A DNA stretch of 64,000 bases from Phaeosaccion multiseriatum (Eukaryota; Protista; Ochrophyta, other classes). The notes under the pieces were generated by a model. The model was not told the DNA's origin and did not search any database. It saw nothing but the letters and a program-made list of their open reading frames with translations. The first letter of the stretch is position 1. Each line of letters begins with the position of its first letter. The stretch lies in contig OZ218952.1 in the NCBI GenBank assembly GCA_965112735.1, positions 5,456,001 to 5,520,000 of the forward strand. The letters are read 5' to 3'. The position numbers and the translations under genes were made by a program. Below, one piece after another: positions 22,841-62,724 of this stretch.

Positions 22841-25800
22841 ATGTCTAGCGTCCTCGACGAGCAGCGTAGAATACTCACAGCCATCTTTCATGCCACGAGC
22901 GGACCCGCTTGGTCTATCACTGCAGGATGGAACACGGAAGCACCATTGGAGACCTGGTTCAGAGTGAGCGTAGAGAAAGAGAATGGCTATGTGGTGAAGC
23001 TCGACCTGAAAAGGAACGGCCTCAAAGGTGAGAGAGGTGTGATTATGGTTGTTGCGCCTTAAGGTCCTGAAGAGTTTTCTAAAGTCTTGAAGGTTCGAAA
23101 AGGTCGCTCTTTGTTCATGCAACAACATGTGATGGGTCTAGAATATTCGGGAAGGACGAAGTAAAGGGGGGCAAGAATGAGGCAGCGGCATGACGTGGTA
23201 GTCCAGCGACCCGTTCGCGTCCCTTTCACTTGATATAAGTATGGCTGAAGAACTTTCCTCCGCTCCGCAGGGAGCATTCCGCCGCAACTTGGACAGCTTT
23301 CAAGCCTTCAAGAACTACGGCTCGACGAGAACAATCTAGGTAGGTGGTACGCACACCCGTTCGCGTCCTATTCGCTTGATAGTCGAATGACAAAGAACTT
23401 TCCTCCGCTCGGCAGGGAGCATTCCGCCCGAGCTTGGAAGTCTTGAGAACCTGACGGTGCTCAGCCTGTGGGGCAACAAGCTCACTGGTAAGTGGTACGC
23501 ACACCCGTTCGCGTCCCTTTGGCTTGATAGTCGTGTGACAAGGAAAATCCCTCCGCTCCGCAGGGAGCATTCCACCCGAGCTTGGAAGTCTGGAGAAGCT
23601 TGAGAAATTGAACCTCTTCAAGAACAAGCTCACTGGTAAGTGGTACGCACACCCGTTCGCGTCCCTTTCACTTGATTTTAGTATGGCTGAAGAACTTTCC
23701 TCCGCTCCGCAGGGAACATTCCGCCCGAGCTTGGAGGTCTGCAGAACCTTCAGGGTCTGGACCTCTCCAGCAACAAGCTCACTGGTGAGTGGTACGCACA
23801 CCCGTTCGCGTCCTCTTGACTTGATATTATGACAAAGAACTTCCCTCCGCTCCGCAGGGAGTATTCCAAGTGAGCTTGAAAGTCTGAAGGAGCTCAGCCG
23901 CTTCAGCTTCTCCAACAACAAGCTCACTGGTGAGTCATACGCGCGCGTCCCCTTGACTTGATATGAGTATGACCAAAGAACTCTCCTCCCATCCGCAGGG
24001 AGCATTCCAAGGGAACTTGGAGGTCTGGAGAAGCTTGAATATTTGAGCCTCTTCCACAACAAGCTCACTGGTAGGTGGTACGCGCACCCGTTCGCGTCCC
24101 TTTCACTTGATATGAGTATGACCAAAGAACCCCTTCCTCCCATCCACAGGGAGCATTCCACCAGAGCTTGGAGGTCTCGTCCAGCTCACCTCTCTGTTCC
24201 TCCACAACAACCAGCTCTCCGGTGAGTGGTACACACACCCGTTCGCGTCGCGTCCCTTTGACTTGATGTAAGTATGACCAAGACCATTCCTCCGCTCCGC
24301 AGGGAATATTCCGCCCGAGCTTGGAAGTCTTGAGAACCTTACGGGACTCAGACTGTGGGGAAACAAGCTCACTGGTAAGTGGTACGCACACCCGTTCGCG
24401 TCCCTTTCACTTGATATGAGTATGACCAAAAGAACTCTCCCCCATCCGCAGGGAGCATTCCGCCCGAGCTTGGAGGTCTGGAGAAGCTTGAGAATTTGGA
24501 CCTCAACGGCAATGAGCTCACTGGTGAGTGGTACGCACACCCGTTCGCGTCCTCTTGACTTGATATAAGTATGGCTGAAGAACTCTCCTCCGCTCCGCAG
24601 GGAACATTCCGCCCGAGCTTAGAAGTCTTGAGAACCTAACGGTACTCAGCCTCGGCAACAACCAGCTATCCGGTGAGTGGTACGCGCGCCCGTTCGCGTC
24701 CCTTTGACTTGATATGAGTATAACCAAAAACTTTCCTCTGCTCCGCAGGGAACATTCCGCCCGAGCTTGGAAGTCTCGGGAACCTGACGGCGCTCAACCT
24801 GCGGGACAACCAGCTCATCGGTAAGTGGTACGCGAACCCGTTCGCGTCCCTTTGACTTGATATAGGTATGGCTAAAGAACTTTCCCCTCATCTCTCAGGG
24901 ACTATTCCGCCGCAACTCGGAAAGCTTTCAAACCTTCGAGGACTTTATCTCCACAGGAACAATCTAGAAGGTAGGTGGTATGCACACCCGTTCGCGTCCC
25001 TTTCGCTTGATAGTCGTGTGACAAAGAACTTCCCTCCGCTCCGCAGGGAGCATTCCATGGGAGCTTGGAAGTCTGAAGAGGCTTCAGCATTTCGACCTCT
25101 CCAACAACAAGCTCACTGGTAAGTGGTACGCACACCCGTTCGCGTCCCCTTGACTTGATATTAGTATGGCTGAAGAACTTTCCCCACATCTCAGGGAGTA
25201 TTCCTTGGCAACTTGGACAGCTTTCGAACCTTCGAAAACTTTGGCTCAACCAGAACAATCTAGAAGGTATGTGGTACGCTTACCCATTCGCGTCCCTTCG
25301 ACTTGCTATGAGTATGACCAAAGAACTTTCCTCCCATCCGAAGGGAGCATTCCAAGGGAGCTTGGAAGTCTGGAGAGACTTGTGCATGTGGACCTCTCCT
25401 CCAACAAGCTCACTGGTAAGTGGGACGCGTACCCGTTCGTGTCCCTTTCACTTGATACTTGGGTAGGGAACATGGCGAGATTTTCGATGAGCCAAATTCT
25501 GAGTGGTCCGGCTCCATGGCGACGTTCAGCTTGACCCACTGCTGCATTTCAAGACTCGCCACGCATCCTCCGCCGTGCCGTTCTACCTTGTCGCATCCCT
25601 GCCTGCAGGCTTTGCAACGGGCACGAATGAAGATTGGATACTCAGATTTTGCGAGGGGATCAACTTTCAGGGGGAAGATAACCCGCCCCAGTACCACTTT
25701 CAGGTGCAAGATAACCCGCTGCAGTACCCGCCACTTGGGGTGCTGCTGCAAGGACGGCACATGACGCAAAAGTACTTCGATGACTTGCGGAAGTGTTCAA

Positions 25801-28800
25801 AAGAAGTAAGGAGCCTCAAGGTCATGCTCTTAGGACCCACAACTGTGGGCAAGACCAGGTACGATAATGCCCTCTTCATCACTTTGTCCTGTCTAGCTAA
25901 GTGCGATGGGCGACAGAGGAGTTCGAGGGCAGGAGAGAGGAGGGGAGAACTGCTAAGATACACACGTCTCGTTGTCCCCGCTGCTCTTGATTAGCTTCCA
26001 ACATGCCCCCCCCCCCCCCCCAACGTTTCGTCCTTGTGTAGTTTGATGCGTAGCATCAAGGTAGGGCGGCCCACAGCAACGGTGGAAGGGGAGAACCCGT
26101 CGACGGTCGGTGTTGACGTCGATGGCTGCGAGCTCAAGACGTCGGAGGGTTCGGTTGTGTCGTGTCGCTTCTTCGACTGTGGTGGTCAGCAAGACTATCA
26201 CGGCCTGAGCAGCATGTTTATGACAGAAGGAGCTGCCTACCTGCTGGTTTGGAGTCCGCCGGACGATCCAAATGGCGCTGAGCTTGAACCGTTCTTTCAA
26301 ATGCTCAAGCACGGCGCTTCGAAGTCCACTGCGCTCGGTGTAGCCAACAAATGCGACCAGTGGAAGGGGGCTCAGAGCGATTTGACGGCACGCTGTACGT
26401 CATTTCACAGTCTTGTGAAGAAGGAGCTGCGGGAGGGGCGCATAGCGTTGGGGGGGAAAATACACATGACGAGCTGCAAGGAGGAGGACGGAGGGCGGGA
26501 GGAGGAGCTAAGGGTGTTGATGGAGACGTTAACGGGCCTAGGCCAGACGTACGTAGTGGGTTCCTTGCTCAAGAAAGCAGTGGCCCTTCTGGACCGCATG
26601 GCGAAGGGGCACATCTTTCTGACAATGGGTGAAGTGGAAGAAGCGTGGAAGGTGGAGTTGCAGAAGGACGGAGACGAAGACGAGGACAAGGAGCTTGCGG
26701 ATGTGATGCTCCAGTGCGGAGTCAATATGCTGTAAGTACGGAGGGCCTTTGGGGCGAGTTTGTGCGGAATTGAGCGAGCCTATTAGCTGGGTATGGTCCA
26801 GATTCCCAAGGTTGTTGGCGTGGCTGAATACTGTGTCGGAACAGAAGGCCGTTTTGTATTGAGCCCGAGGCGAGAGGGAACGTAAGCACCTGTGGGGGGC
26901 AGGGGTAGCTAGATCACTTTCCCGCCGTGCCCCTCTCATTGCATCTCTCGGTGGGCGTGCAGGGACAGGAACGGAAGACTCGTGGTGGCTGGAGGCGTGG
27001 AGAAAGGTGCAGCCATTGTTCTTTCAGAGGCGGTCTTGTTTTCCAAGTTGATCAGTCCGCTCCTGACTCCGGCCGATGCCATCACTTCCGACGGTGAAGA
27101 AGTGCTTCTCGGTCGCAACGAGGTGTGTGTGAGATGGCAAAGAAAGATAGGAAGGGTTAGAACTTGGCCAGAGTGTACTGATGTTGTGTCGTCCGTCTGA
27201 TGCCCCCCCCCTTGTCCACACTTTTCTCTTCGCTTGCCTCCACCTGCCGTATCCTCGGTATTGGTTTTTGTGTGCCCCCCACGGAAGGGACCTTTCACGC
27301 CACCCGCACTGAAGCCACTGAAGCCGAAGCGACAAGTGGACGACGGCGACGATGGACTTAAACTTGACAGGTGTGGTGCCAACCAACTCAAGGATGGGGT
27401 GCTGACGGTTGGGTTTGCCAGATCGGTGTGGAACGCTGTTCTTCTTCGTGAGGGGGGGGACGGGGGAAGGACTTTCGACGAACAACAAGAAAAGGCTTTG
27501 CTGGGAAGGTTGGTGGACCTGGGCATCATTTTTGAGAAGGCTCAGCACGACAATGCCCCGGGAGGGGTCAATGGTGGTGGCAATCCTGCCGAGGGGCAAG
27601 AGCTCCAATTCGTGATCTCCCTCCGCATGCCAGATGCGATGGACAGCTCGAATGAGCGAGCGCAGGAATTGAGAGAAGCGGCAGATGATATCAGTTTGAA
27701 GATGAAGGATTGGGAATGCTTGAAGCAGGTCTACCTCCAGCTGGAGCGCCCCCCTTCCCCCGGGACCATTGCCAGGCTGGTGTCTACTCTCTCCACCAAG
27801 GGACTCGGTGAGGTGGCGGTTGGCTGGAGGCAAGGGGCGTTGTTCGTCGCCGCCCAAGAGGCGTACATGGCATTTGTCAGCTATGACTGGACGAAACAAC
27901 GCTTGTACCTGAAGGTGGCTGGTCTGTGGGAAGAAGGGGAGAAGCAGGTGAGGAAGAGGAAGGGGGGTCATATACGTGGCCTGATGTACTCACCACCGCG
28001 TCGCACTTACTCTGACTCTTGCAAGTTGTGTTTCTACACTTTTTTTTTTTGCGCTTCATCAACAATGCAACAAAGTGCGACTCTTTCCCGACCGTTGCGA
28101 TGGGCTTGTTGCTCCGACACACGGTCCACCACCTCTCCTCCTACAAGTGCCGGTGGAAGGCCGTGTACGTGGTCAAGGACATGAGCATGAAAGAAAAGTG
28201 GGAGCCACTCTGTGAGGTAAGAGAGAGTGTGTGCACTATGCTTGTGGTATGGTCGAGGCTTCTCTCGTGCCAGAGAAGTGTTGCTCTCAGCTTTGGTGCG
28301 GCTGACAGATATCATAACCTGTGTGCTTTGGACGGAAACAGGGAAACCTTCAGGAACTCGGATGTGTGCTGGATAGGTCGAGGGAAGCTGAGGCAGGCAC
28401 AAACGAGCAGCGCCGGCTGTCGGAACAGGATGTCGAGGGGCTGATCGCTACACCCGTCCCGAACCCCCGCTGGGCGCCGCCGGCCCTGGCCATGGGTCGC
28501 TTTGGAGACGAGTGGAAGACAGTGCGCGACAAGTTTGAAGGGGAGGCTTTCGGTACACTACGGACTTGTGTGAACACGTTCACGAAAAACCAGGTACAAG
28601 GCTGCTGCGAGCGAAGAGTAGGCCCAAGAGTAGGCCTGTGTTGACGACTTTGCTCTCCGAAACCTGTGTTCTGATGCTGATTTCCTTTTGTCCCTCTCTT
28701 CTCTCGAAGGGATACCTGCGGAAGGCGCGAGAGGAGCTTCTCAAAGACGGCGAAAGTCTTGTAATGAAGGACGATACGGATTACCAAGTCTTCCTGAGCC

Positions 28801-29501
28801 ACGCCGGGACGGAGAAGCGGGGCATTGTGTCTCTGCTGCACAGATGTCTGTGGCAGAGAGGAATTCCGACTTTCTTGGACGAGAAAAGCCTAAAGCCAGG
28901 AGACCGCGCCGAGCACAAGATGCTCCACGTTGCCCGCACCGCCCCGATTGGCGTGGTCGTGCTGAGTCCGTCTTTTGTGTGCCGAGAGTGGCCTCTTCAG
29001 GAGATGCAAATCTTCATGGACAGGGCGAGGAAGGGGGAAGCAACGCTGGTGCCGTTATTCTTCGGGCTGACGGTTGAGGAATGCTGGAACCCGCAGCTAC
29101 TACAAAAGAACCATCCTGACGTGAAGGATACGTGGGGCGAATGGAGCGAAGGGGAGGGAGGGGTTTGGCGTTGGCTGAAGGCGCAGAGATGGGCAGGATC
29201 GGTTTGGAGTTGGCTTACGGGGCAAAGAGGGGCAGGACCGGGTTGGAGTTGGCTTAAGGGGCAGAGACGGGACGAGCTTGCGAAAGACCTGCTGGGGAGT
29301 GTGGGTACGCACACGGGTCTCCGCGACGACCAGAAAGAAGATCTGTTTGCTTTCGCCAAAAGAGTGGCCAACAAGGTGGAAAGGGCATTGACGACGTTTC
29401 ATTCCAAGTCCGAGAAAAGAAAGTTCGAAGGGTTGGAGGGGGGTTCCACGCTGACATGCACGTGTGATGGGGGGGGGGGGGGGGCAGAAGCCCGGACGTG
29501 A
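22841..29501 (+). CDS. LRR-ROC-COR-TIR (ROCO family) protein, paralog 1; N-cap plus 15 LRR exons
   Basis: N-cap exon 22841-23027 and LRR exons 23271-25415. Roc motifs GPTTVGKTS, STVGV, FFDCGGQ, VANKCD and TSCK (exons 25609-25858, 26042-26731). COR-like exons to 28593. TIR exon from 28710 with VFLSHAG, TFLDEKSL, VVVLSPSF, WPLQE and LVPLFF. Confidence 0.88.
23271..25415 (+). repeat. LRR exon/intron cassette array 1 (15 exons; first 69 bp, others 72 bp; ~149-bp period)
   Basis: Exon starts: 23271, 23416, 23564, 23713, 23858, 23999, 24150, 24303, 24452, 24601, 24749, 24899, 25047, 25195, 25344. All are phase 1 and fit GxIPxxLGxLxxLxxLxLxxNxL. Confidence 0.95.
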
Positions 29502-30022
29502 CGGGTACCATAACACAAGAATGAAATTGTATATAAATGTATTGTGTAGTGGAAGGAAGGTCCAGAAACGTGACGTCCATCTCAGAACGCCAGCCAGAGC
29601 CGCCAGTCTTCGGGCCTACGTGCTTCCACGCCGGGCCTTCTCAGGCGGTGGTCTTGTTTTTGGACTCTGCTTGCCTCTTGTCTGTCTGTCTGTCTGTCTG
29701 TCTACCACTCAGTTCGCTCGTTCGCTCGCTTGCTCCTCCACGCTCTTTTGCTGCATTGGTGTAACTTTGGTGTGCGTTGGTGTGCCTCAAGCTTAACTTG
29801 TGTGGTGGGCCGTCAAGGACCATCCACTTCACATACACAGTACTAGGACGGAGGGGAGCGGCCGCTTTTCATGTGGAGCCCTTGTCATGTTGCAAGTTGC
29901 TGGGCGGTGAGTCAGGCAACGTCTTAGCACCGTAGGAATCACATTGCGGGGTCCGGCCTCTCTCTCCGCTCTCCTCTTTTAATCCATAAACTATAATTGA
30001 ATTGACAGATGGTATTAATTAA

Positions 30023-30600
30023 CACTCGATTTGCGTAAAAATCGCCCAAATCGCCCGATTTCTGGCCCAAAACGGTTTTAGCGCATTTGCAGGAAAATGA
30101 CGCTGGGAGGAGCGCTATAGCTCTTCGTGTAGCTCTTTGAGATCCCCACCGATCCATGGTCTTTCGGCTTTCATCGCCTCTTCCCTTCCGTAGTTGTCAG
30201 CATTTCCGCAGCAGCACCCCCTTCCCGGGGGGGGGGAGAAGGGGGATATGCACGCCACGGAAATCGCTCATGGGCAGCTTGCCCGCCCTTCTGCAAGAGA
30301 ACAGGCGCAGCGCTACGGCGGCTAGCCACAGTGGAGCAGCAGCAGGACCCTTGGCAAGCCTGGTGCGATTTCCGTGGCGTGCACATCCCCCGTCCCCCCC
30401 CCGCCGGGAAGGGGGTGCTGCTGCGGAAATGCTGATAACTACGGAAGGGAAGAGGCGATGAAAGCCGAAAGACCATGGATCGGTGGGGATCTCAAAAGAG
30501 CTACACGAAGAGCTATAGCGCTCCTCCCAGCGTCATTTTCCTGCAAATGCGCTAAAACCGTTTTGGTCGAAATTTGGGCGATTTTTACGCAAATCGAGTG
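30023..30600. mobile_element. Foldback MITE with long TIRs inserted at TTAA (piggyBac-like)
   Basis: TTAA-CACTCGATTTGCGTAAAAATCGCC...GGCGATTTTTACGCAAATCGAGTG-TTAA with ~245-bp arms. The empty site GGTATTAAAA is present in units 2-4. Confidence 0.85.
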
Positions 30601-30918
30601 TTAAAAAAGGGGGATAGAAAATAGGAGAGCTTGCTTGGGTTGTGCTCAAACACATAAGACCATGCAACAAGTAACCTTCCCCCTTACCCTACAACCCCCC
30701 CTGGCCCAGACAGTGTAACCGCCCCCCCCCTCCTCGGTCTTTCCCACTTGGGCCTCTAAGAACCCATTTTTTGCTTACATGGGGCTCTCAGGGTACCCAT
30801 TGTTTGCTTACCTGGGCCTCAGGGTATCTAGTGTTTGCCTACTTCGACCTCAGTTGGGCCCCAGGGTACCCATTACCCATTGTTCGCTAACTTGGGCCTG
30901 AGGGTGCCCATTATGTGC

Positions 30919-32384
30919 TTACTTGGGCCTCAGGGTGTTGATTATCTTGGCTCTATCGTCGTCATACACGTCTTCCCCGAGCCCAATCTTGGGGTTGCTC
31001 AGGAACTCGTTCTGAGGAGGAGGAGGAGGAGGAGCAGGAGGAGGAGGAGGACGAGCAGTAGCAGCAGCAGGAGGAGGAGGGTGAGGAGGAGCAGCAGGAG
31101 GAGGGTGAGGAGGACACACACACACACGGGCACACACACACGCCCAGACAACACGGGCAAACACAAACACACACATACACACACATACACACATACATAC
31201 ACACGCCGACACACATACACACACATACATACACACACCCACCTGCGCATCGTCGCTCTGATACACACACGAGAGCAGCGGGTTGTCGTCAAGATCGCCC
31301 ACAAAGGCCCATGTATTCATGCCGTTCTTACACGTGTTGACCTCCTTATCCGACAGCAAATGGCGACGCTGCAGCACCTCTACCACGTTAGCGGGCCTCA
31401 GCACACACGCCGGCTTGACGTCCGCTTGGCTCACATGGATGGAGAAGGGGTTGAAGGTGACAAACACGCGTTGGTCCAGAGCCATGGCGGAGGAACCGTA
31501 TATCTGCGGAGGATTGAGGATGGAGGAGGAGGAGGAGGAGGAGGAGGATGGAGGAGAAGGAGGAGGATGGAGGAGGAGGAGGAGGAGGAGGAGGAGGATG
31601 GAGGATGGAGGAGGAGGAGGAGGAGGAGGAGGAGGAGGAGGAGGAGGAGGAGGGGGAGGGGGAGGAGGAGGATGGAGGAGGAGGGGGATAAATAGCAGTG
31701 TATGAATGACAGTGGAGGAACGGGCCCGGGTGGGGTGGGGTGGGGGGTGGGGTGGCAGAACAGAGTAGAGAGGAGTAGAGGCATGAGACAGAGAGAGGAC
31801 AATGGTTCATCAGGACTGATCAGGACTGACACTCAAACAAAGTGTGGCGTGCTCTCTCCTCTTCCCTCTCCTCTGTTCGCCCCTCTCTGCCTCCTCTCCA
31901 GCTCGACAGACGGAATGACGGACGAACGGAAGTGGGGGTGGGCTTGCGCCCTCCTCTCTCCCCTCTCTCCTCTATTCTGTTCTCGCTCTCCTCTCTCCTC
32001 CGGCCTCTTTCTCCCCTCTCTCCTCCGGTCTGTTTCTCTCCTCTCCTCTTTCTCCTCTATTCTCTCCCTCCCCTCTCTCCTCTGTTCCCTCTCCTCTCTC
32101 CTCCTCCTCTCTGGTCTCTCTCTCCTCTCTCTTTCCTCCAATTTCTCTCTCTCCTCTCTCCTCCTCCTCTCTGGTCTCTGTTCTTTGTACTCTCTCCTCT
32201 CTTCCCTGTCCTCTCTCTTTCCTCCGGTCTCTCTCTCCTCTCTCCTCTGTTCTCCCCTGTACCTGGCAAATATTAGGCTTCGGCGCTTGGCGGTCGATGG
32301 CGTCTCGGCTGGCAAGGTCCTTCGGGTTGGTGTTGATGGCGGAGTCAAGCGTTACGCCCGTGCCTATACCGAGCACGAACATGC
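30919..32384 (-). pseudogene. DUF3172-like (cyanobacterial/plastid) gene, 3' three exons only (32384-32263, 31503-31243, 31011-30919)
   Basis: Peptides FVLGIGTGV, LASRDAIDRQAP, ICQIYGSSAMALDQRVFVTFNPF, ACVLRPAN, CKNGMNTWAFVGDL and CVYQS. The first visible exon begins at an acceptor whose upstream intron is cut by the unit junction. The family was recognised from memory, not by a search. Confidence 0.72.
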
Positions 32385-32830
32385 CTGCGACGACAGAGAG
32401 AGGAGGGGGGGGGAGGGGGAGGTAGAGACAAGAGAGCGAGGGCGCGCACACGCAGAGACGGGAGGCGTCAGTCGGAGAGGGGAAAAGAGAGCCCCTCTAT
32501 CGTCTACAGACGTCGGTGCATGAGCTGCTGCGGTTGAGACTGTGGTGGCCGGTTGCCAAAAGCATCAGTGTGCAAGACACCCTCCAGGTGACTCACCCGA
32601 GCCTGCATCGCTCGTCCTGTCAATGGGGCCTACGCAGGCGCTGGTCGTCCCCCCGACCCACCACTAGTACTGCCACTGGCTGCATCACCAAACAAGGCTT
32701 CCTCTGCACTAGTACTCCATGGAGAGCGAGTATATGGCAGCAGCGGAAGCAGTGAAGGAGCTGCTGTTTCACAGAGGTTTAGCGCAACGACGGCGAGAAC
32801 GGGAGCTACTCTTACGGAGTTGGTTTTGCA

Positions 32831-33061
32831 CTGTGCTAAGCTAAGATAGTAGAAACGTTGCGGGGTTTGGACTAAGTATATGCTGCAAAATCAGCATAGT
32901 CTTGGATGGTCTCAACGCCCATAGAACATGTTATCGGCCCCCCCCCCCCCCGGCCCGATAACATGTTCTATGGGCGTTGAGACCATCCAAGACTATGCTG
33001 ATTTTGCAGCATATACTTAGTCCAAACCCCGCAACGTTTCTACTATCTTAGCTTAGCACAG
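32831..33061. mobile_element. Longer (231-bp) version of the foldback insertion at the same site in unit 2
   Basis: Same outer arms as 18947-19063, plus additional inner arms around a poly-C loop. Confidence 0.82.
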
Positions 33062-33749
33062 AACTAGTTCTGAGAGGATAACCAGGGGTGCAACCAGCTG
33101 GAACTAGGGGTGTATCCAGTTGGAAAGCAACGCAAGTTCGAAGCGAACACGCCACACCGACGTCCGTTATCATTTCTGCAGTACCACGTGCGCAAGAGGA
33201 CGAAAAGAAGGGCGGTCACCTCAGCCCAGCCAGGTACACAGCGGTCTGGCATCTTCAAGGTCACATCCATTTGTGAATTTGATGGATTCAAAGCTCGTTC
33301 AGCGTGTGTCTAAGTAATGGTGAGACGTTACTTTTAGACAACCATAGATGGCACTTAAGGGTGTATATCTCAGGCCCAGTCTTCCTTCCGTAATGAGACT
33401 GGCCAGCGTCGATTTGGGAGTTGCAAATGGAGCAGTGCTTGACAGGGAAGGGGCGAGGGGAAGAGGAGCCCCCAGGACATTTTGGCCGCCGTGGCTGGAA
33501 GAGCCGCACCAGTCAAGAGAGCACGAGCATCGGATCATTTTTAAGTGAAGACTCCACGCCATATGCGTTGACACCAGTAAAACCAATTCATTGCGACGTT
33601 TTCTTATCCACGAGACTCCGTTATCTGAAGACGCATCGCAGCCCAGAACAACCTCATCCTCCTCCTCCTCCTCCTGCCGCCGCCGAGTCTTTCCACATCC
33701 TGCACTCGCCATTTGTGAGCCCCTCCTACTTTTGCTCCTCCTGCCTCGC

Positions 33750-34765
33750 AACGGGAGAAGTACCTGGCCAGAGCCCTCAGCCACAGCGTGAAAGGTGCTG
33801 GTGCGTGGCTCCACCTTCAGCCGACCAAGAAGGCAGGGGGAGCACCACTCCACCTCACAGACGCCGAGCACAAGAGTGCCATTCGGCGAAGACTTGGCTC
33901 TGACCCCACCTACAGCAAGGACTGTCATAAGTGCCCTGGCAAGGCGCTGACGGAGGGGCACATCGTCACCTGTACCAAGACGGGGCTCAGCACACCCCAA
34001 CACGACGCTGTGCAGAAGGCACTTGTCGCCCTGCTGAAGAGCGAGGGCCTGGGCAGAGGGATAGTCCAGAACACCGGCTTCCCCTTCTTCATGAGGGCAA
34101 GAACGATCACCCCGCGACGAGGGAGAGGAAGGAGCAACGCCGTGAGGAGTGACGCCCACGTGGCCAAGCAGATGGAGATGGACATCGTGACTCCCCCCAG
34201 GATGTTTGAGCTTCCGTCCGATCATGAATATGGCGACGGCCACAAGTCCCTCATGATCGACGTCACGCTCACAGATGCCACCAACACCACCAACCGGGCC
34301 AAGGCATCGAAGGAGGCACTCGCGGCAGCCAAGAAGGCTGAAGCTACCAAGCGGACCAGGTATGGGGTGCCACAGGTAGGCATGGAAGGCCAGGGTGGGG
34401 ACATCCACTATGACCCCACGCGATACCACCTCGTCCCTTTCGCAATAGAACAGCAAGGCGCATTTGGTCCTTCTGCTCAGACGTTTATGAAAACACTCGC
34501 CACCCACATGGCTGGTGGGGGGCACGAACATCTGGACACGAGGGCTTACGCGAGAGCTGTTTGCGTCATTCGGCGACGATTAGCCGTAGCGCTCCAGCGG
34601 GCCCGACACGAACGATCGGTTCGACACAGGATCCTGGCTGGTATCAACTTTGTTCCAATGGGGAGATGAGTCAGAGGGACACGACCTCGAGGGCTAAGTT
34701 CCCCGGGGCGGTGAGACATTACTTTTAGACAACCATAGATGGCACTTAAGGGTGTAATATATAAA
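33750..34765 (+). mobile_element. 5'-truncated CRE-like non-LTR retrotransposon (CCHC knuckle plus RLE)
   Basis: AGAWL, CHKC...HIVTC, QHDAV, MDIV, IDVT, K..RY, VPFAIEQQG and AVALQR. 14-bp TSD TCCTCCTGCCTCGC at 33736-33749 and 34766-34779. Confidence 0.88.
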
Positions 34766-34934
34766 TCCTCCTGCCTCGCCTCCCCCTTTCACATTCCTCT
34801 CCTCCACTCTCCCTTCTCCCACTTCTTGCCAACTCCAACCCTCTTCTCTTCTCCTCCTCCACCCTGCCGAGGGCGCAGCCCGAAGCACCACCTTGTAAGG
34901 GTGTAATTTTTTTTTGCGTGTTCAAGGTTGCAGG

Positions 34935-40900: not shown

Positions 40901-41270
40901 GCCTCTTCAGGAGATGCAAATCTTCATGGAAAGGGCGGAGAAGGAGAAAGCAGTGTTGGTGCCGTTATTCTTCGGACTGACGGTTGAGGAATGCTGGGAC
41001 ACGGGCAAATTAGAAGACAACCATCCTGACGTGAAGAAGACATGGGGAGACTGGAGCGAAGGGGAGGGAGGGGTTTGGGGTTGGCTTGAGCAGGGGAAGA
41101 CAGCAGACAAGCTTGCGAAAGACCTGCTGGGGGGTGTGGGTACGCACACGGGTCTCCGCGACGACCAGAAAGAAGATCTGTTTGCTTTCGCCAAAAGAGT
41201 GGCCAACAAGGTGGAAAGGGCATTGACGACGTTTCATTCCAAGTCCGAGAAAAGAAAGTTCGAAGGGTAG
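34935..41270 (+). CDS. LRR-ROC-COR-TIR protein, paralog 2; N-cap plus 14 LRR exons
   Basis: Same exon structure as paralog 1. Roc motifs and the TIR (WPLQE) are intact. Stop at 41270. Confidence 0.88.
35361..37377 (+). repeat. LRR cassette array 2 (14 x 72-bp exons)
   Basis: Exon starts: 35361, 35510, 35671, 35820, 35968, 36116, 36265, 36414, 36565, 36714, 36863, 37011, 37157, 37306. Confidence 0.95.
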
Positions 41271-44462: not shown

Positions 44463-44710
44463 TCGGCCCTGGAAGAGGTTATCAGATTACTGATTACGGC
44501 CGGCGCAGCCGGCCTGATTACTGATTACTGCCGGCGCCAGCCGGCCTGATTACTGATTATGGCGCCAGCCGGGTCTGATTACTGATTATGACCGGCGCCA
44601 GCCGGCCTGATTACTGATTATGACGGGCGCTAGCCGGCCTGATTACTGATTATTGGCGCCAGCCGGCCTGATTACTGACCGGCGCACACTGTAACCTCTT
44701 CCAGGGCCGA
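44463..44710. mobile_element. 248-bp MITE with TCGG termini and 6-bp TSD
   Basis: TCGGCCCTGGAAGAGGTTA...TAACCTCTTCCAGGGCCGA. TCTCAG is duplicated at 44457-44462 and 44711-44716. Internal GCCGGCCTGATTACTGATTA repeats are shared with the larger elements. Empty site in units 2 and 4. Confidence 0.92.
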
Positions 44711-51500: not shown

Positions 51501-52337
51501 AGTTTGAAGGGGAGGCTTTCGGTACACTACGGACTTGTGTGAACACGTTCACGAAAAACCAGGTACAAGGCTGCTGCGAGCGAAGAGTAGGCCCAAGAGT
51601 AGGCCTGTGTTGACGACTTTGCTCTCCGAAACCTGTGTTCTGACGCCGAATTCCTTTTGTTCCTCTCTTCTCTCGAAGGAATCCCTGCGGAAGGCGCGAG
51701 AGGAGCTTCTCAAAGACGGCGAAAGTCTTGTAATGAAGGACGATACGGATTACCAAGTCTTCCTGAGCCACGCTGGGACGGAGAAGCGGGGCATTGTGTC
51801 TCTGCTGCACAGATGTCTGTGGCAGAGAGGAATTCCGACTTTCTTGGATGAGAGAAGCCTGGAGGCAGGAGACCGCGCGGAGGACAAGATGCTCCAGGTG
51901 GCTGACACCGCCCCGATTGGCGTGGTCGTGCTGAGTCCGTCTTTTGTGCGCCGAGAGTGGCCTCTTCAGGAGATGAAAATCTTCATGGAGAGGGCGAAGA
52001 AGGGGGAAGCAACGCTGGTGCCGTTATTCTTCGGGCTGACGGTTGAGGAATGCTGGAACACGCAGCTACTACAAAAGAACCATATCCTGACGTGAGGGAT
52101 ACGTGGGGCGAATGGGGAGCAGGGGAAGGAGGGGATTGGGATTGGCTAGAGGAGGGAGAGACAGCGGTAGGGCTTGCTCAACGCCTGCTGGGGGGTGTGG
52201 GTACGCACACGGGTCTCCGCGACGACCAGAAAGAAGATCTGTTTGCTTTCGCCAAAAGAGTGGCCAACAAGGTGGAAAGGGCATTGACGACGTTTCATTC
52301 CAAGTCCAAGAAAAGAAAGGCAGAAGCCCTGACATGA
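45550..52337 (+). CDS. LRR-ROC-COR-TIR protein, paralog 3; 16 LRR exons (two are 144 bp); frameshift late in the TIR exon
   Basis: Same structure as the other paralogs. AACCATATCCTGAC at ~52078-52091 versus AACCATCCTGAC in paralogs 1 and 2 gives a stop at 52095; the ancestral frame would end at 52337. Confidence 0.82.
45973..48422 (+). repeat. LRR cassette array 3 (14 x 72 bp plus 2 x 144 bp)
   Basis: Exon starts: 45973, 46121, 46270, 46419, 46565 (144 bp), 46786, 46934, 47082, 47235, 47388, 47541, 47689, 47838, 47984 (144 bp), 48203, 48351. Confidence 0.95.
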
Positions 52338-53116
52338 CGGGTACCGTAGCACAAGAATGAACTTGTATATAAATGTATTGTGTAGTGGAAGGAAGATCCA
52401 GAAACGTGACGGCCAGCCAGAGCCGCCAGCCTTCGGGCCTACGTGCTTCCACGCCGGGCCTTCTCAGGTGGTGGCCTTGTTTTTGGACTCTGCTTGCCTC
52501 TTGTCTGTCTCTCTCGTTCGCTCGCTCGCTCGCTCCTCCACGCTCCTTTGGTGTAACTTTGGTGTGCGTTGGTGTGCCTCACGCTTGACTTGTGTGGTGA
52601 GCCGTCAAGGACCCTCCACTTCACATACACGTGTTGTACTAAAATAAAACGGAGGGGAGTCCTTGTCATGTTGCAAGTTGCTGGGATGTGAGTGAGGCAA
52701 CGTCTTAGCACCTTAGGAATCACATTGCGGGGTCCGGCCTCACTCTCCGCTCTAGTCGTACAAATTAATCCATAAACTATAATTGAATTGACAGATGGTA
52801 TTAAAAAAAAATGGTATTACACAAAAGGAGAGCTTGCTTGGGTTGTGCTCAAACACATAAGACCATGCAACAAGTATACCCCTCCCCCTTACCCTACAAA
52901 CCCTGGCCCAGACAGGGTAACCGCCCCCCCCCTCGGTCTTTCCCACTTGGGCCTCTAAGAACCCATTTTTTGCTTACATGGGGCTCTCAGGGTACCCATT
53001 GTTTGCTTACCTGGGCCTCAGGGTATCTAGTGTTTGCCTACTTCGACCTCATTTGGGCCCCAGGTACCCATTACCCATTGTTCGCTTACTTGGGCCTGAG
53101 GGTGCCCATTATGTGT

Positions 53117-54735: not shown

Positions 54736-55649
54736 CTGCGACGACAGAGAGAGGAGGGGGGGGGAGGGGGAGGTAGAGACAAGAGAGCGAGGGCGCGCAC
54801 ACGCAGAGACGGGAGGCGTCAGTCGGAGAGGGGAAAAGAGAGCCCCTCTATCGTCTCCAGACGTCGGTGCATGAGCTGCTGCGGTTGAGACTGTGGTGGC
54901 CGGTTGCCAACAGCATCAGTGTGCAAGACACCCTCCAGGTGACTCACCCGAGCCTGCATCGCTCGTCCTGTCAATGGGGCCTACGCAGGCGCTGGTCGTC
55001 CCCCCGACCCACCACTAGTACTGCCACTGGCTGCATCACCAAACAAGGCTTCCTCTGCAGTAGTGTTCCATGGAGAGCGAGTATATGGCAGCAGCGGAAG
55101 CAGTGAAGGAGCTACTGTTTCACAGAGGTTTGGCGCAACGACGGCGAGAACGGGAGCTACCCTTACGGAGTTGGCTTTGCACGAGGATAACCAGGGGTGA
55201 CAGGAGGAAAAAGGGGTGTATCCAGTGGGAAAGGAACGCAAGTTCGAAGCGAACACGCCACACCGACGTCCGTTATCATTTCTGCAGTACCACGTGCGCA
55301 AGAGGACGAAAAGAAGGGCTGGCACCTCAGCCCAGCCAGGTACACAGCGGTCTGGCATTTTCAAGGTCACATCCATTTGTGAATTTGATGGATTCAAAGC
55401 TCGTTCAGCGTGTGTCTAAGTAATGGTGAGACGTTACTTTTAGACAACCATAGGATGGCACTTAAGGGTGTATATCTCAGGCCCAGTCTTCCTTCCGTAA
55501 TGAGACTGGCCAGCGTCGATTTGGGAGTTGCAAATGGAGCAGTGCTTGACAGGGAAGGGGCGAGAATAGCCCTCAGGACATTTTGGCCGACGTCGCAGGA
55601 AGAGCCGCACCAGTCAAGAGAGCACGAGCATCGGACATCATTTTGAAGG

Positions 55650-57240
55650 TTTTATATATTACACCCTTAAGTGCCATCTATGGTTGTCTAAAAGTAATGT
55701 CTCACCGCCCCGGGGAACTTAGCCCTCGAGGGCGTGTCCCTCTGACTCATCAGTTCTCCCCATTGGAACAAAGTTGATACCAGCCAGGATCCTGTGTCGA
55801 ACCGATCGTTCGTGTCGGGCCCGCTGGAGCGCTACGGCTAATCGTCGCCGAATGACGCAAACAGCTCTCGCGTAAGCCCTCGTGTCCAGATGTTCGTGCC
55901 CCCCAGCCATGTGGGTGGCGAGTGTTTTCATCAACATCTGAGCAGAAGGACCAAATGCACCTTGCTGTTCTATTGCGAAAGGGACGAGGTGGTATCGCGT
56001 GGGGTCATAGTGGATGTCCCCACCCTGGCCTTCCATGCCTACCTGTGGCACCCCATACCTGGTCCGCTTGGTAGCTTCAGCCTTCTTGGCTGCCGCGAGT
56101 GCCTCCTTCGATGCCTTGGCCCGGTTGGTGGTGTTGGTGGCATCTGTGAGCGTGACGTCGATCATGAGGGACTTGTGGCCGTCGCCATATTCATGATCGG
56201 ACGGAAGCTCAAACATCCTGGGGGGAGTCACGATGTCCATCTCCATCTGCTTGGCCACGTGGGCGTCACTCCTCACGGCGTTGCTCCCCCCTCTCCCTCG
56301 TCGCGGGGTGATCGTTCTTGCCCTCATGAAGAAGGGGAAGCTGGTGTTCTGGACTATCCCTCTGCCCAGGCCCTCGCTCTTCAGCAGGGCGACAAGTGCC
56401 TTCTGCACAGCGTCGTGTTGGGGTGTGCTGAGCCCCGTCTTCGTGCAGGTAACGATGTGCCCCTCCGTCAGCGCCTTGCCAGGGCACTTATGACAGTCCT
56501 TGCTGTAGGTGGGGTCAAAGCCAAGTCTTCGCCGAATGGCACTCTTGTGCTCGGCGTCTGTGAGGTGGAGTGGTGCTCCCCCTGCCGTCTTGGTCGGCTG
56601 AAGGTGGAGCCACGCACCAGCACCTTTCACGCTGTGGCTGAGGGCTCTGGCCAGGTACTTCTCCCGTTGGTCCTGCTGTGGAATGGCTTTCAATCGTTCC
56701 AAGAAGTCCGCCCTCGCCTTCGACGTGAGGAGCTTGGTATAACGCTTCTGGGCGCCTCGCCGCTCTCCGTGTCGGCTGTGTGGAATGGAGGGTCCTCCCT
56801 CGTCCAACATCCTGGTTTCCTCTGTCCGCCAGCGTGGCCGGCCGCCCTCATCATCGTCATCATCACCGCCTGGTTCCACATCATGCTCATCCTCAGGGGC
56901 TGCGTCACTTCCACCATCTGGGTCGTCACTTTCACCCTGTGGGTCTTCATCACTCCCCCCCCCTGGGTCTGCCTCGCTATCAGAGGTTGGTCCATCTGCG
57001 GTCCCCTGCTGCCCTGCCGCCGCGTCGCACCCTTCCGCACCCACCCCAGGGTGTATCCCTGCGGCCCCAACATTATCCTCTTCGTCTAAGTCTGCTCCTT
57101 CACCCCCAGATTGTGTCTCATCCCCCCCGGGGGCATCACTCGCCGCCGGCTGGTCCCCTCTGCCACCGACAGGTGTGTACCCTTCATGCTCTGGGGTGTC
57201 GTCTCTCTCCGGGAAGAGCGTGGTGATCAGCCAGGCATCA
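55650..57240 (-). mobile_element. Longest 5'-truncated CRE-like fragment (acidic linker, CCHC, RLE, 3' UTR)
   Basis: ORF 55719-57044, open upstream to ~57240, with the same motifs as 33750-34765. No RT motifs. No clear TSD, and adjacent host sequence is deleted relative to unit 2. Confidence 0.82.
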
Positions 57241-57506
57241 GTCAGTCATCAGTCAGTCATCAGTCAGTCACATGGCTGAGGGCAAGGCACGGTCTTTCCA
57301 CATCCTGCACTCGCCATTTGTGAGTCCCTCGTACTTTGCTCCTCCTGCCTCGCCTCCCCCCTTCTCCCACTTCTTGCCAACTCCAACCCTCTTCTCTCCT
57401 CCTCCTCCTCCTCCTCCCTGCCGAGGGCGCAGCCCGAAGCACCACCTTGTAAGGGTGTAATTATATCTAAGTAAGCGATTTTTTTGGCGTGTTCGAAGGT
57501 TGCAGG

Positions 57507-60500
57507 ATGTCTAGCGTCCTCGACGAGCAGCGTAGGATACTCACAACCATCTTTCACGCCACGAGCGGACCCGCTTGGTCTAACACTGCAGGATGGAACA
57601 CGGAAGCACCATTGGAGACCTGGTTCGGAGTGGGCGTAGAGAATGGCTATGTGGTGAAGCTCGACCTGATAAGCAATGGCCTCAAAGGTGAGAGAGATGT
57701 GATTATGGTTGTTGCGCCTTGGGTCCTTAAGAGTTTTCTAAAGTCTTAAAGGTTCGAAAAGGTCGCTCTTTGTTCATGCAACAACATGTGATGGGTCTAG
57801 CATATTCGGGAAGGACGAAGTAAAGGGGGGCAAGAATGAGGCAGCGGCATGACGTGGTAGTCCAGCGATCCGTTCGCGTCCCCTTGACTTGACTTGATAT
57901 TAGTATGACTGAACAACTTTCCCCACATCTCAGGGAGTATTCCGCCGCAATTTGGAGAGCTTTCGCACCTTCGAGAACTTTCTCTCATCGCGAACAATCT
58001 AGAAGGTAGGTGGTACGCACACCCGTTCGCGTCCCTTTCGCTTGATTGTAGCGTGACCAAAGAGCTCTCCTTCCATCCACAGGGAACCTTCCCAAGGAGT
58101 TGGGAGATCTGACCAACTTGACGTGGCTCTCACTGGAAAACAACAAGCTCACCGGTGAGTGGTACACTTTCCCCTTTCGCGTCCTCTTGACTTGATATTT
58201 AGTATGGCTGAAGAACTTTCCTCCCATCCGCAGGGAGGATTCCGCCGCAACTTGGACAGCTTTCAAACCTTCAATACCTACGGCTCGATAATAACAATCT
58301 AGAAGGTAGGTGGCATATATATATATATATATATATACGCACACCCGTTCGCGTCCCTTTTACTTGATATGAGTATGACCAAAGAACTTTCCACCCATCC
58401 GCAGGGAGTATTCCACCCGAGCTTGGATGCCTTGAGAAGCTTCAGAATTTGGTCCTCCAGAACAACACTCTAGAAGGTAGGAGGTACGCGTACCCGTTCG
58501 CGTACCCGTTCGCGTCCCCTTGACTTGATATGAGTATGACCAAAGAACTTTCCTCCCATCCGCAGGGAGCATTCCACCCGTGCTTGGAGGTCTTCAGAAC
58601 CTTGTGTTTCTGTCCCTCAGCGGCAACAAGCTCACTGGTGAGTGGTACGCGCACCCGTTCGCGTCCCTTTCACTTGATATGAGTATGACCAAAGAACTTT
58701 CCTCCCATCCGAAGGGAGCATTCCAAGGGACCTTGGAAGTCTGGAGAGACTTGTGCGTTTGGACCTCTCCGACAACAAGCTCACTGGTAAGTGGGACGCG
58801 TACCCGTTCACGTCCCTTTCACTTGATACTTGGGTAGGGAACATGGCGAGATTTTCGATTAGCCCCTTCTGAGTGGTCCGGCTCCCTCGGCGACGTTCAG
58901 CTTGACCCACTGCTGCATTTCAAGACTCGCCACGCATCCTCCGCCGTGCCGTTCTATCTTGTCGCATCCCTGCCTGCAGGCTTTGCAACGGACACGAGTG
59001 AAGATTGGATACTCACATTTTGCAAGGGGATCCACTACTTTCAGGGGGAAGATAACTCGCCGCAGTACTTTCAGGTGCAAGATAATCCGCTTCAGTATCC
59101 GCCAGTTGGGGTGCTGCTGCAAGGACGGCACATGACGCAAAAGTACTTCGATGACTTGCGCAAGTGTTCAAAAGAAGTAAGGAGCCTCAAGGCCATGCTC
59201 TTAGGGCCCACAACAGTAGGCAAGACCAGGTACGATATGCCCTCTTCGTCACTTTGTCCTGTCTAGCTAAGTGCGATGGGCGACAGAGGAGTTCGAGGGC
59301 AGGAGAGAGGAGGGGAGAAATGCTAAGATACACACGTCTCGTTATTACCCACTGCTCTTGGTTAGCTTCCAACATGCCTTCCCCCCCCCCCGACGTTTCG
59401 TCCTTGTGTAGTTTGATGCGTAGCATCAGAGCAGGGCGGCCCAAAGCAACGGTGGAAGGGGAGAACCCGTCGACGGTCGGTGTTCACGTCGAGGGCTGCG
59501 AGCTCAAGACGTCGGAGGGTTCGGTTGTATCGTGTCGCTTCTTCGACTGTGGTGGTCAGCAAGACTATCACGGCCTGAGCAGCATGTTTATGACAGAAGG
59601 AGCTGCCTACCTGCTGGTGTGGAGTCCGCCCGACGATCCAAATGGCGCTGAGCTTGAACCGTTCTTTGAAATGCTCAAGCACGGCGCTTCGAAGTCCACT
59701 GCGCTCGGTGTAGCCAATAAATGCGACCAGTGGAAGGAGGCTCAGAGCGATTTGACGGCACGCTGTACGTCATTTCACAGTCTTGTGAAGGAGCAGCTCC
59801 GCGACGGGCGCATAACGTTGGGGGGGGAAATACACATGACGAGCTGCAAGGAGGACGGAGGGCGGGAGGAGGAGCTGAGGGTGTTGATGGAGGCGTTAAC
59901 GGACCTAGGCCAGACGTACGTAGTGGGTCCCTTGCTGGAGAAAGCAGTGGCCCTTCTGGACCGCATGGCGAAGGGGCACATCCTTCTGACAATGGGTGAA
60001 GTGGAAGAAGCGTGGAAGGTGGAGTTGCAGAAGGACGGAGACGAAGACGAGGACAAGGAGCTTGCGGATGTGATGCTCCAGTGCGGAGTCAATATGCTGT
60101 AAGTACGGAGGACCTTTGGGGCGAGTTTGTGCGGAATTGAGCGAGCCTATTAGCTGGGTATGGTCCAGATTCCCAAGGTTGTTGGCGTGGCTGAATACGG
60201 TTCGGACCAGCAAGGGCCGTTTTGTATTGAGTCCGAGGCAAGAGGGAACGTAAGCACCCGTGGGGGGCGGGGGTAGCTAGATCACTTTCCCGCCATGCCC
60301 CTCTCATTGCAACTCTCGGTGGGCGTGCAGGGACAGGAATGGAAGACTCGTGGTGGCTGGAGGCGTGGAGAAAGGTGCAGCCATTGTTCTTTCAGAGGCG
60401 GCCTTGTTTTCCAAGTTGATCAGTCCGCTCCTGACTCCGGCCGATGCCATCACTTCCGACGGTGAAGAAGTGCTTCTCGGTCGCAACGAGGTGTGTGTGA

Positions 60501-62724
60501 GATGGCAAAGAAAGATAGGAAGGGTTAGAACTTGGCCAGAGTTTACTGATGTTGTGTCGTCCGTCTGACATGCCTCCCCCCTTGTCCACACTTGTCTCTT
60601 TGCTTGCCTCCACCTGCCGTATCCTCGGTATTGCTTTTTTGTTGCCCCACGGAAGGGACCTTTCACACCACCCGCACTGAAGCCACTGAAGCCGAAGCGA
60701 CAAGTGGACGACGACGATGGACTTAAACTTGACAGACGTGGTGCCAACCAACTCAAGGATGGGGTGCTGACGGTTGGTTTCGCCAGATCGGTGTGGAACG
60801 CCGTTCTTCTTCGTGAGGGGGGGGACGGGGGAAGGACTTTCGACGAACAACAAGAAAAGGCTCTGCTGGGAAGGTTGGTGGACCTGGGCATCATTTTTGA
60901 GAAGGCTGAGTACGACAATGACCCGGGAGGGGTCATTGGTGGTGGCAATCCTGCCGAGGAGCAAGAGCTCCAATTCGTGGTCTCCCTCCGCATGCCAGAT
61001 GCGATGGACAGCTCGAACAAGCAAGCGCAGGCATTGAGAGAAGCGGCGGATGCGATCAGTGAGAAGATGAAGGAAGGGGAATACTTGAAGCAGGTGTACC
61101 TCCAGCTGGAGCGCCCCCCTTCCCCCGGGACCATTGCCAGGCTGGTGTCTACTCTTTCCACCAAGGGACTCGGTGAGGTGGCGGTTGGCTGGAGGCAAGG
61201 GGCGTTGTTCGTCGATGCACAACAGGCGTACATGGCATTTGTCAGCTATGACTGGACGAAACAACGCTTGTACCTGAAGGTGGCTGGTCTGTGGGAAGAA
61301 GGGGAGAAGCAGGTGAGGAAGAGGAAGGGGGGTCATATACGTGGCCTGATGTACTCACCACCGCGTCGCACTTACTCTGACTCTTGCAAGTTGTGTTTCT
61401 ACACTTTTTCGTTTTTGCGCTTCATCAACAATGCAACAAAGTGCGACTCTTTCCCGACCGTTGCGATGGGCTTGTTGCTCCGGCACACGGTCCGCCATCT
61501 CTCCTCCCACAAGTGCCGGTGGAAGGCCGTGTACGTGGTGAAGGACATGAAAGAAGAGTGGGGGCCACTCTGTGAGGTAAGAGAGAGTGTGTGGACTATG
61601 CTTGTGGTATAGTCGAGGCTTCTCTCGTGCCAGAGAAGCGTTGCTATCAGCTTGCGTGTGGCTGACAGATATCATAACTTTTGTGTTTTGGGGCGGAAAC
61701 AGGGAGACCTTCAGGAACTCGGGTGTGTGCTGGATAGCAGGTCGAGGAAAGCTGAGGCAGGCACAGACGAGCAGCGCCGGTTGTCTAAACATGATGTCGA
61801 GGGGCTGATCGCTACACCCGTCCCGAGCCCCCGCTGGGCGCCGCCGACCCTGGCCACGGATCACTTTGGAGACGAGTGGAAGAGGGTCTGCCACGACTTT
61901 AGAGAGGAGGCTTTCGGTACACTACGGACTTGTGTGAACACGTTCACGAAAAACCAGGTACAAGGCTGCTGCGAGCGAAGAGTAGGCCCAAGAGTAGGCC
62001 TGTGTTGACGACTTTGCTCCCCGAAACTTGCGTTCTGATGCGGATTTCCTTTTGTCCCTCTCTTCTATCAAAGGAACGCCTGCAAAAGGCGCGAGATGGG
62101 CTTCTCAACGACGGCGTAAGTCTTGTAATGAAGGACGATACGGAGTACCAAGTCTTCCTGAGCCACGCTGGGACGGAGAAGCGGGGCATTGTGTCTCTGC
62201 TGCACAGATGTCTGTGGCAGAGAGGAATTCCGACTTTCTTGGATGAGAGAAGCCTGGAGGCAGGAGACCGCGCGGAGGACAAGATGCTCGAGGTAGCCAA
62301 GGCCGCCCCGATTGGCGTGGTCGTGCTGAGTCCGTCTTTTGTGTGCCGAGAGTGGCCTCTTCAGGAGATGCAAATCTTCATGGACAGGGCGGAGAAGGGG
62401 GAAGCAACGCTGGTGCCGTTATTTTTCGGGCTGACGGTTGAGGAATGCTGGGACACGGGCAAATTAGAAGACGACCATCCCGGCGTGAAGAAGACATGGG
62501 GAAAGTGGAGCAAAGGGGAGGAAGGGGGTTGGGGTTGGCTTGAGCAGGGGAAGACAGCAGACGAGCTTGCGAAAGACCTGCTGTGGGGTGTGGGTATGCA
62601 CACGGGTCTCCGCGACGACCAGAAAGAAGATCTGTTTGCTCTCGCCAAAAGAGTGGCCAACAAGGTGGAAAGGGCATTGACGACGTTACATTCCAAGTCC
62701 AAGAAAAGAAAATTCGAAGGGTAG
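57507..62724 (+). CDS. LRR-ROC-COR-TIR protein, paralog 4; N-cap plus 6 LRR exons
   Basis: Same structure. Roc and TIR motifs are intact. Stop at 62724. Confidence 0.88.
57934..58786 (+). repeat. LRR cassette array 4 (6 x 72-bp exons)
   Basis: Exon starts: 57934, 58083, 58234, 58405, 58566, 58715. Confidence 0.95.

Follow-up and report, generated by a model that had tools for sequence, protein, structure and literature searches.

Four tandem LRR-ROCO genes with cassette-built repeat arrays and a C-terminal TIR domain in Phaeosaccion multiseriatum, a candidate diversified defence cluster

Brown-algal ROCO proteins with leucine-rich repeats (LRRs) have been candidate immune receptors since 2012, and to our knowledge no output module has ever been identified for them. 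Here we analysed a 64-kb window (64,000 nucleotides) of the ochrophyte Phaeosaccion multiseriatum (assembly GCA_965112735.1, contig OZ218952.1, positions 5,456,001 to 5,520,000 of the forward strand; coordinates below count from the first letter of the window), in which four neighbouring LRR-ROCO genes form a tandem cluster. In Ectocarpus, ROCO genes carry one LRR per 72-nt exon, the exons are shuffled, the genes occur in clusters with pseudogenes and under positive selection, and an adaptive-immunity hypothesis has been raised for them (Zambounis et al. 2012, PMC3341825). These findings were later extended to four brown algae (Teng et al. 2024, PMC11378527). In the published genes (Ectocarpus, Saccharina and others), the C-terminus is a conserved but unnamed ROCO domain, membrane-spanning segments, a peptidase (group 3) or DUF900 (group 4). 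A TIR domain in a brown-algal ROCO protein is reported in neither PMC3341825 nor PMC11378527, and further full-text literature searches returned none.

The cluster lies on the + strand between the ATG of gene 1 (22841) and the stop codon of gene 4 (62724), with a tandem unit of about 11 kb. We built the gene models by hand: gene 1 was traced by open frames and splice signals, and its exons were then mapped onto the other three units. Splicing gave four complete models with open frames, in which the splice positions are common to all four units and every site is GT-AG. Gene 1 (22841-29501) has 23 exons and encodes 1402 aa, gene 2 (34935-41270) has 22 exons and encodes 1316 aa, gene 3 (45550-52095) has 24 exons and encodes 1336 aa, and gene 4 (57507-62724) has 14 exons and encodes 1135 aa. 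In gene 1, an LRR cap and the LRR exons are followed by a linker, Roc, a putative COR, TIR and a C-terminal extension. A preliminary description, made from the letters of the window alone, had counted 15, 14, 16 and 6 LRR exons (51 in total) upstream of a part of fixed structure. Exon parsing gave the same numbers, with arrays at 23271-25415, 35361-37377, 45973-48422 and 57934-58786 in genes 1 to 4, and the seven exons downstream of the arrays have identical splice positions in all four genes. We consider it reasonably probable that these are recently duplicated LRR-ROCO genes of brown-alga type with a C-terminal TIR domain, whose cassettes diversify in the germline and whose TIR provides a defence output. 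The cassette mechanism of LRR-ROCO genes is already published; the intronic junction is mapped here, and the TIR effector is a new element for the family.

Tandem Repeats Finder placed periodic arrays with a 148-149-bp period at 23209-25457, 35317-37423, 46044-48464 and 58172-58820, in keeping with the period of about 149 bp noticed earlier. All 51 LRR exons are bounded by AG and GT and are open throughout, and in each the first two bases finish a Gly codon whose first base ends the preceding exon, which corresponds to intron phase 1. The absence of stops and frameshifts from the LRR exons and their common phase had both been described correctly, whereas a size of 72 bp, given for every exon, holds for 48 of the 51: the first LRR exon of gene 1 (23271-23339) is 69 bp, and two exons of gene 3 (46565-46708 and 47984-48127) are 144 bp, with two irregular repeats each. 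These three exceptions keep the phase, and all 15 exons of gene 1, the other 14 of which are 72 bp, hold a single LRR. Behind the N-terminal LRR cap, each protein carries 6 to 18 plant-type repeats of 24 residues. The pattern GxIPxxLxxLxxLxxLxLxxNxLx fits 48 of the 51 exons, with G1, P4, L10, L13, N21 and L23 invariant, and the LRR region is homologous to Pfam-positive LRRs of ROCO proteins from Chrysoparadoxa (E 1e-60) and Ectocarpus (E 5e-48).

The introns between LRR exons are 69-99 nt long (69-81 nt in gene 1), and 30 of the 47 measure 76 or 77 nt. They are 78% alike (p 0.22), compared with a proportion of differences at synonymous exon sites (pS) of 0.45, and are thus more conserved than the silent sites of the exons they separate. 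Many positions of an intron core are conserved at 90% or above. The core, CC[CA][GA]TTCGCGTCC, occurs at 41 sites from 23210 to 58654, on the + strand only, and is confined to the LRR introns, among them the half-introns that lead into the first LRR exon and follow the last one; no copy was found elsewhere in the 64-kb window or on its minus strand. Reading the conserved core as a structured RNA was rejected, with z about 0 for five introns. Nor did either strand of the window contain orphan, inactivated or reverse-strand copies of LRR cassettes outside the arrays.

Taking these features together, the locus closely resembles the brown-algal type-I LRR-ROCO genes, and one-LRR-per-exon shuffling had rightly been described as known from Ectocarpus (PMC3341825, PMC11378527). 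Both have an LRR cap and one 24-residue repeat (GxIPxxL...LxLxxNxL) per in-phase 72-nt exon; both show shuffled arrays that vary in length, and tandem clusters with pseudogenisation, and in both the exposed positions are under positive selection. The brown-algal Roc is followed by a divergent COR that escapes InterProScan, and the Roc described here by a putative, likewise divergent COR. Over LRR and Roc, gene 1 is 37% identical to an LRR-ROCO protein of Ectocarpus sp. 6 (E 5e-48). Unlike the brown-algal proteins, those described here end in a TIR domain with a catalytic Glu and have no convincing membrane segment, which sets them outside the published groups. Unlike in Ectocarpus, inactivated or reverse-strand LRR exons are absent in and near these arrays.

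The fixed parts of the four genes are collinear and share 90-92% protein identity, with a synonymous divergence (dS) of 0.06-0.10 and an intron divergence of about 0.05. The LRR exons, in contrast, have a mean pairwise identity of 65%, and calling the genes near-identical therefore overstates their likeness. The best matches of the LRR exons are mostly non-collinear, indicating that the arrays are reshuffled mosaics. One such mosaic segment in gene 4 (58155-58637, + strand) comprises intron 2 and exon L3, which match gene 2 intron 8 and exon L9 (99% for the exon), and exons L4-L5, which match L2-L3 of gene 2 (96%). Intron 3 of gene 4 (58306-58404) contains a (TA)n insertion; its start resembles that of gene 2 intron 9, and its end is exactly that of gene 2 intron 1. 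Since it begins as one gene 2 intron and ends as another, a crossover took place inside the intron. The earlier suggestion that short homogenised introns act as exchange joints is supported to this extent: the arrays are shuffled, at least one junction is intronic, and the introns are more alike than silent sites. As each cassette is phase 1-1, exchange between introns would leave the frame intact, and we propose germline diversification of the arrays, with the conserved introns as the sites of unequal crossing-over or gene conversion.

The most variable repeat positions are 14, 15, 17, 19, 20 and 22, which are the x positions of LxxLxLxxNxL; in known LRR structures these positions face the ligand. 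Among exon pairs at least 85% identical, the ratio of nonsynonymous to synonymous change (dN/dS) reached 5.9 at these six canonical solvent-exposed positions and 0.29 in the framework, a comparison in which the exon pairs are non-independent and the sites were partly picked from the same data.

Downstream of the gene 1 array, the linker and Roc exons span 25609-26731 (+ strand), with the P-loop at 25833-25856 in the linker exon and a Roc exon (26042-26731) that also holds the start of a putative COR-A. A 33-bp in-frame tandem unit lies in the LRR-Roc linker (25663-25728) and is present twice in genes 1 and 4 but only once in genes 2 and 3. In gene 1, Roc matched PF08477 with 36.9 bits against a Pfam cut-off of 27, and its PDB sequence matches include CtRoco and LRRK2 Roc. 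The G1, G3 and G4 motifs (GPTTVGKT, DCGGQ and NKCD) are intact in all four genes, and the G5 motif is also present in gene 1; TSCK occurs in three of the four, with TSCE in gene 3. The region of the putative COR and the following linker (26963-28593) consists of exons 26963-27122, 27288-27947, 28076-28216 and 28342-28593, and the terminal exon (28710-29501) encodes TIR, with the catalytic Glu codon at 29001-29003, and a helical, Trp-rich extension. The corresponding tail exons on the same strand are 37571-37787, 37968-38654, 38887-39046, 39214-39870, 40000-40134, 40261-40515 and 40620-41270 in gene 2 (Glu codon 40911-40913); 48616-48838, 49024-49707, 49940-50099, 50265-50921, 51051-51185, 51311-51562 and 51679-52095 in gene 3 (Glu codon 51970-51972); and 58980-59229, 59412-60098, 60331-60490, 60656-61312, 61442-61576, 61703-61957 and 62074-62724 in gene 4 (Glu codon 62365-62367). 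No signal peptide or convincing membrane helix was predicted in the proteins, and they are therefore probably cytosolic.

The terminal exon of gene 1 matched Pfam TIR_2 (3e-14, 53.9 bits) and TIR (7e-14, 52.4 bits), and among PDB sequences it matched AtTIR (1e-13) as well as BtTir, AbTir, BtpA, ROQ1, RPV1, RUN1 and L6. The W-x-x-x-E motif of the alpha-C region reads WPLQE in all four genes; its Glu aligns with the catalytic Glu of AtTIR, BtTir and AbTir, and Glu98 is invariant in an alignment of 33 sequences. An AlphaFold2 model of the TIR reached a mean predicted local distance difference test (pLDDT) of 80.8, with a core above 90. Using this model, Foldseek returned plant TIRs for all of the top 34 matches, with template-modelling scores of 0.8-0.85 (normalised to the target), and E 3e-8 to RPPT-TIR, AtTIR, L6, RUN1 and RPP1. 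In defence-system libraries, the TIR matched PDC-S66 (E 2e-17), ThsB (2e-9), retron RT-TIR and SAVED-TIR, PADLOC being the source for PDC-S66 and ThsB. The conserved catalytic Glu and fold suggest, by analogy with the family, that this TIR is of the NAD-cleaving (NADase) type. The helical, Trp-rich extension after the TIR is present in genes 1, 2 and 4 only. It contains a 39-bp Trp-rich in-frame tandem repeat (29162-29271 in gene 1), with 2.8 copies in gene 1 and one each in genes 2 and 4.

Among 1.84 billion representative sequences, the nearest relatives of this TIR were three unnamed proteins of Chrysoparadoxa australica (CAM9660036.1, CAM9907097.1 and CAM9880587.1), at 44-50% identity, and a collection of 5.8 billion held no closer protein. 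With the TIR exon alone as query, no match was found among proteins of 145-460 aa, and a search with a Chrysoparadoxa-led alignment, in which the exons of the window were further rows, returned only Chrysoparadoxa proteins. The Chrysoparadoxa proteins, which we found in no paper, share the order of Roc and TIR and the same extension after TIR, and the CAM9660036.1 locus likewise has 72-bp phase-1 LRR exons with introns of about 69 nt upstream of its Roc exon. They differ in that Roc is only 32% identical and the inter-domain region lacks detectable similarity (hhalign P 0.22); their gene models are truncated at contig ends. On CAXMZZ020000768.1 (1-3590), CAM9660036.1 begins inside Roc, and 72-bp LRR exons and a P-loop exon lie upstream at the contig end. 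Because these exons are unannotated, the public model of CAM9660036.1 is truncated. Separately, a 1568-aa protein from a Logan assembly (P0155) has an LRR and Roc, with COR-A below threshold (E 1e-6) and TIR_2 matched weakly (E 0.07), and may represent another LRR-ROCO-TIR lineage.

We also compared the proteins with TIR receptors and defence proteins of other groups. Plant TIR-NB-LRR receptors (RPP1, ROQ1, RUN1, L6) and TIR-only proteins gave the best structural match to the TIR, with the catalytic Glu aligned. The plant receptors likewise unite sensing by LRRs, a nucleotide switch and a TIR effector within a single protein and are encoded in clusters under diversifying selection. Unlike them, the proteins of the cluster have a Roc small GTPase and a putative COR as the switch in place of a STAND-type NB-ARC ATPase, and the order is reversed, with the LRRs first and TIR last. 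The beta-A motif of the TIR (FLSHAG..K) is nearer to bacterial TIR_2 proteins than to the plant SFRG motif. A STAND NTPase (NB-ARC or NACHT) was found by Pfam in no exon, so the proteins are not NLR members, though they may work alike. Bacterial TIR defence proteins (AbTir, ThsB, PDC-S66, retron RT-TIR) are without Roc-COR and LRR, and AbTir and BtTir are 25-30% identical to the TIR of the cluster. A TPR-ROCO-TIR protein is mentioned for the red alga Chondrus crispus (PMC11378527); it joins a ROCO core to TIR in another algal lineage, and by that account it has a TPR sensor in place of cassette LRRs. Lamprey VLRs resemble the cluster in using LRR modules as exchangeable cassettes. In the lamprey germline, however, VLR genes lack parts that somatic assembly supplies from flanking cassettes, whereas the genes described here are complete in the germline and splice their cassettes as exons. 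The functional analogy with NLRs or VLRs that had been drawn is thus reasonable for NLRs, judged from domain order only, and is not supported for VLRs, given the complete germline genes and the lack of orphan or reverse-strand cassettes.

We propose that ligand binding to the LRRs would alter the nucleotide or dimer state of Roc-COR and bring TIR domains together, and that the assembled TIRs might cleave NAD+ or make a nucleotide signal leading to defence or cell death, as in plant TIR-NB-LRR receptors and bacterial TIR systems. TIR/NAD+ immune chemistry is common to plants, animals and bacteria. The C-terminal TIR with its catalytic Glu would give the algal family a concrete, assayable effector and link it to this chemistry. 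If this is true, a Roc-COR GTPase in place of the STAND ATPase of NLRs would represent a third design for a receptor that joins sensor, switch and TIR. The Chrysoparadoxa proteins, with the same layout, suggest that more than one genome carries the fusion.

Several observations weigh against the reading of the cluster as intact receptor genes with a defence output. An immune role is suggested by family knowledge only. The public runs holding the locus come from one organism and two samples, and the four that we examined contained no spliced transcripts: the contigs are DNA-like, running across exon-intron borders without joints at the predicted introns. The fixed part has a dN/dS of 0.5-0.85, implying weak constraint, and the limits stated above for the ratio of 5.9 apply equally to the signal of diversification. 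In gene 3, an insertion of two bases (AT, within ATAT at about 52082-52085, + strand, located by aligning the four paralogues) shifts the frame in the last exon, outside the LRR exons; a stop at 52095 follows directly after the TIR core, and the extension present in the other three genes is lost. The putative COR had no Pfam COR-A or COR-B match in any exon at E up to 10 and no match in phmmer or profile searches of PDB sequences, and the AlphaFold2 model of its main exon (27288-27947; seven-row alignment) had a pLDDT of 37 and was unusable.

On the other side, the nearest ESM Atlas neighbours of the segment following Roc are COR-A clusters (score 0.90-0.91), and those of the next exon are COR-A/COR-B clusters (0.84-0.87). 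The region also gave a collinear blastp match to the COR region of the Ectocarpus sp. 6 ROCO protein (E 0.002) and a weak local hhalign match (P 0.0025) with shallow profiles, and brown-algal COR is known to escape InterProScan (Teng et al. 2024, PMC11378527). From their position, the Atlas neighbours and the weak blastp and hhalign matches, the approximately 490 residues directly after Roc are probably COR. Of the switch named Roc-COR at the outset, the Roc half is thus secured by Pfam and motifs, while the COR half stays below every hidden Markov model threshold and fold prediction of its main exon failed. The same qualification applies to the view of sensor, switch and effector in one chain, of which the variable LRRs, Roc and the TIR with its catalytic Glu stand, and to structure prediction, which succeeded for the TIR and not for the main COR exon.

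The four genes could instead be ordinary signalling ROCO paralogues without a role in pathogen sensing, with endogenous partners as the LRR ligands and a TIR that serves only as a protein-interaction scaffold or in stress or developmental signalling. Many brown-algal ROCO genes indeed respond to abiotic stress (Teng et al. 2024, PMC11378527), an immune phenotype is known for no member, and the weak constraint on the fixed part would fit; the conserved catalytic Glu and TIR fold, the diversifying change at ligand-facing LRR positions, the tandem birth and death of the genes and a TIR that scores best against defence-type TIR models make this explanation rather unlikely. We think it more doubtful still that they are decaying recent copies with little or no function, possibly mobilised together with neighbouring transposon sequences, whose frames are intact only through youth or through conversion by a functional copy elsewhere. 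Pseudogenes make up half of the Ectocarpus ROCO loci (PMC3341825), transposon-like open reading frames (ORFs) lie between the genes in both orientations, and the gene 3 frameshift and the dN/dS of up to 0.85 point the same way. Yet about 15.5 kb of coding sequence is stop-free, where neutral drift at 2.5% change would be expected to leave 3-4 stops per gene (P of no stop about 0.02-0.03 per gene). Since random change of this extent leaves a gene stop-free only 2-3% of the time, the frames are being maintained. Moreover, the length differences of the tail exons are all multiples of 3, whereas the tail introns differ by 1, 2, 5 or 12 bases, and none of the 68 internal splice sites of a set has been lost.

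The conserved intron core raises the further idea that it signals targeted somatic or germline-programmed cassette exchange, in the manner of lamprey VLRs or during development, so that clonal lineages would carry differing LRR-ROCO-TIR repertoires in an adaptive-like system with a TIR NADase as its output. Programmed recombination was already raised as a hypothesis by Zambounis et al. (PMC3341825), and it would accommodate a core that is conserved, restricted to arrays and to the coding strand, together with the one intronic junction. Some DNA contigs also contain joints that skip near-multiples of 149 bp, although their shorter side is only 20-30 nt, so that they are not usable, and artefacts or paralogues are expected where a repeat family is assembled into de Bruijn contigs. 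Against this idea, each germline gene is already complete, the 64 kb hold no cassette that is orphan, inactivated or on the reverse strand, the introns have no significant RNA structure, and ordinary meiotic unequal exchange explains all observations; we regard programmed exchange as very improbable. Finally, the differing array lengths might be assembly artefacts of a collapsed or expanded repeat. A 149-bp period with introns 78% alike would invite such errors, and the contigs are too short to span an array, but the contigs from the same sample match along the arrays at 99% or above, the cassettes average only 65% alike, and the arrays differ in order and in features private to one of them (the 69-bp exon, the two 144-bp exons, the (TA)n intron and 89-nt introns). 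Such an origin is hardly credible. With these points considered, germline diversification of LRR-ROCO-TIR genes with a defence output is the reading we prefer.

The spacers between the genes were characterised by self-blastn, Tandem Repeats Finder and ORFs. The spacer of the tandem unit after gene 1 (29502-34934) consists of a 3' flank, (GAG)n, (AC)n and CT-rich simple repeats and a copy of a transposon-like ORF, and equivalent spacers follow genes 2 and 3. Copies of the transposon-like ORF lie upstream of genes 1, 2 and 4 (22002-22634, 33749-34769 and 55647-56669), the gene 2 copy being inverted relative to the others; these intergenic ORFs had no Pfam match. Gene 3 is instead preceded by a 32-bp tandem repeat (44485-44678), of a kind also found at 1725-1839 and 20736-20851. 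Downstream of gene 1 only, a near-perfect palindrome of about 586 bp (30019-30604) has nested inverted arms that are 96-100% complementary and nearly identical 101-aa ORFs on both strands, and looks like a foldback element of the MITE (miniature inverted-repeat transposable element) type. Upstream of the cluster, an inverted-repeat pair (997-2000 and 20574-22037; 92-98% identical) with (CTCC)n and (AGGG)n microsatellites brackets about 19 kb, in which the minus strand encodes a DExH helicase-like gene of several exons; an ITPase-like exon (3664-4113) lies there as well.

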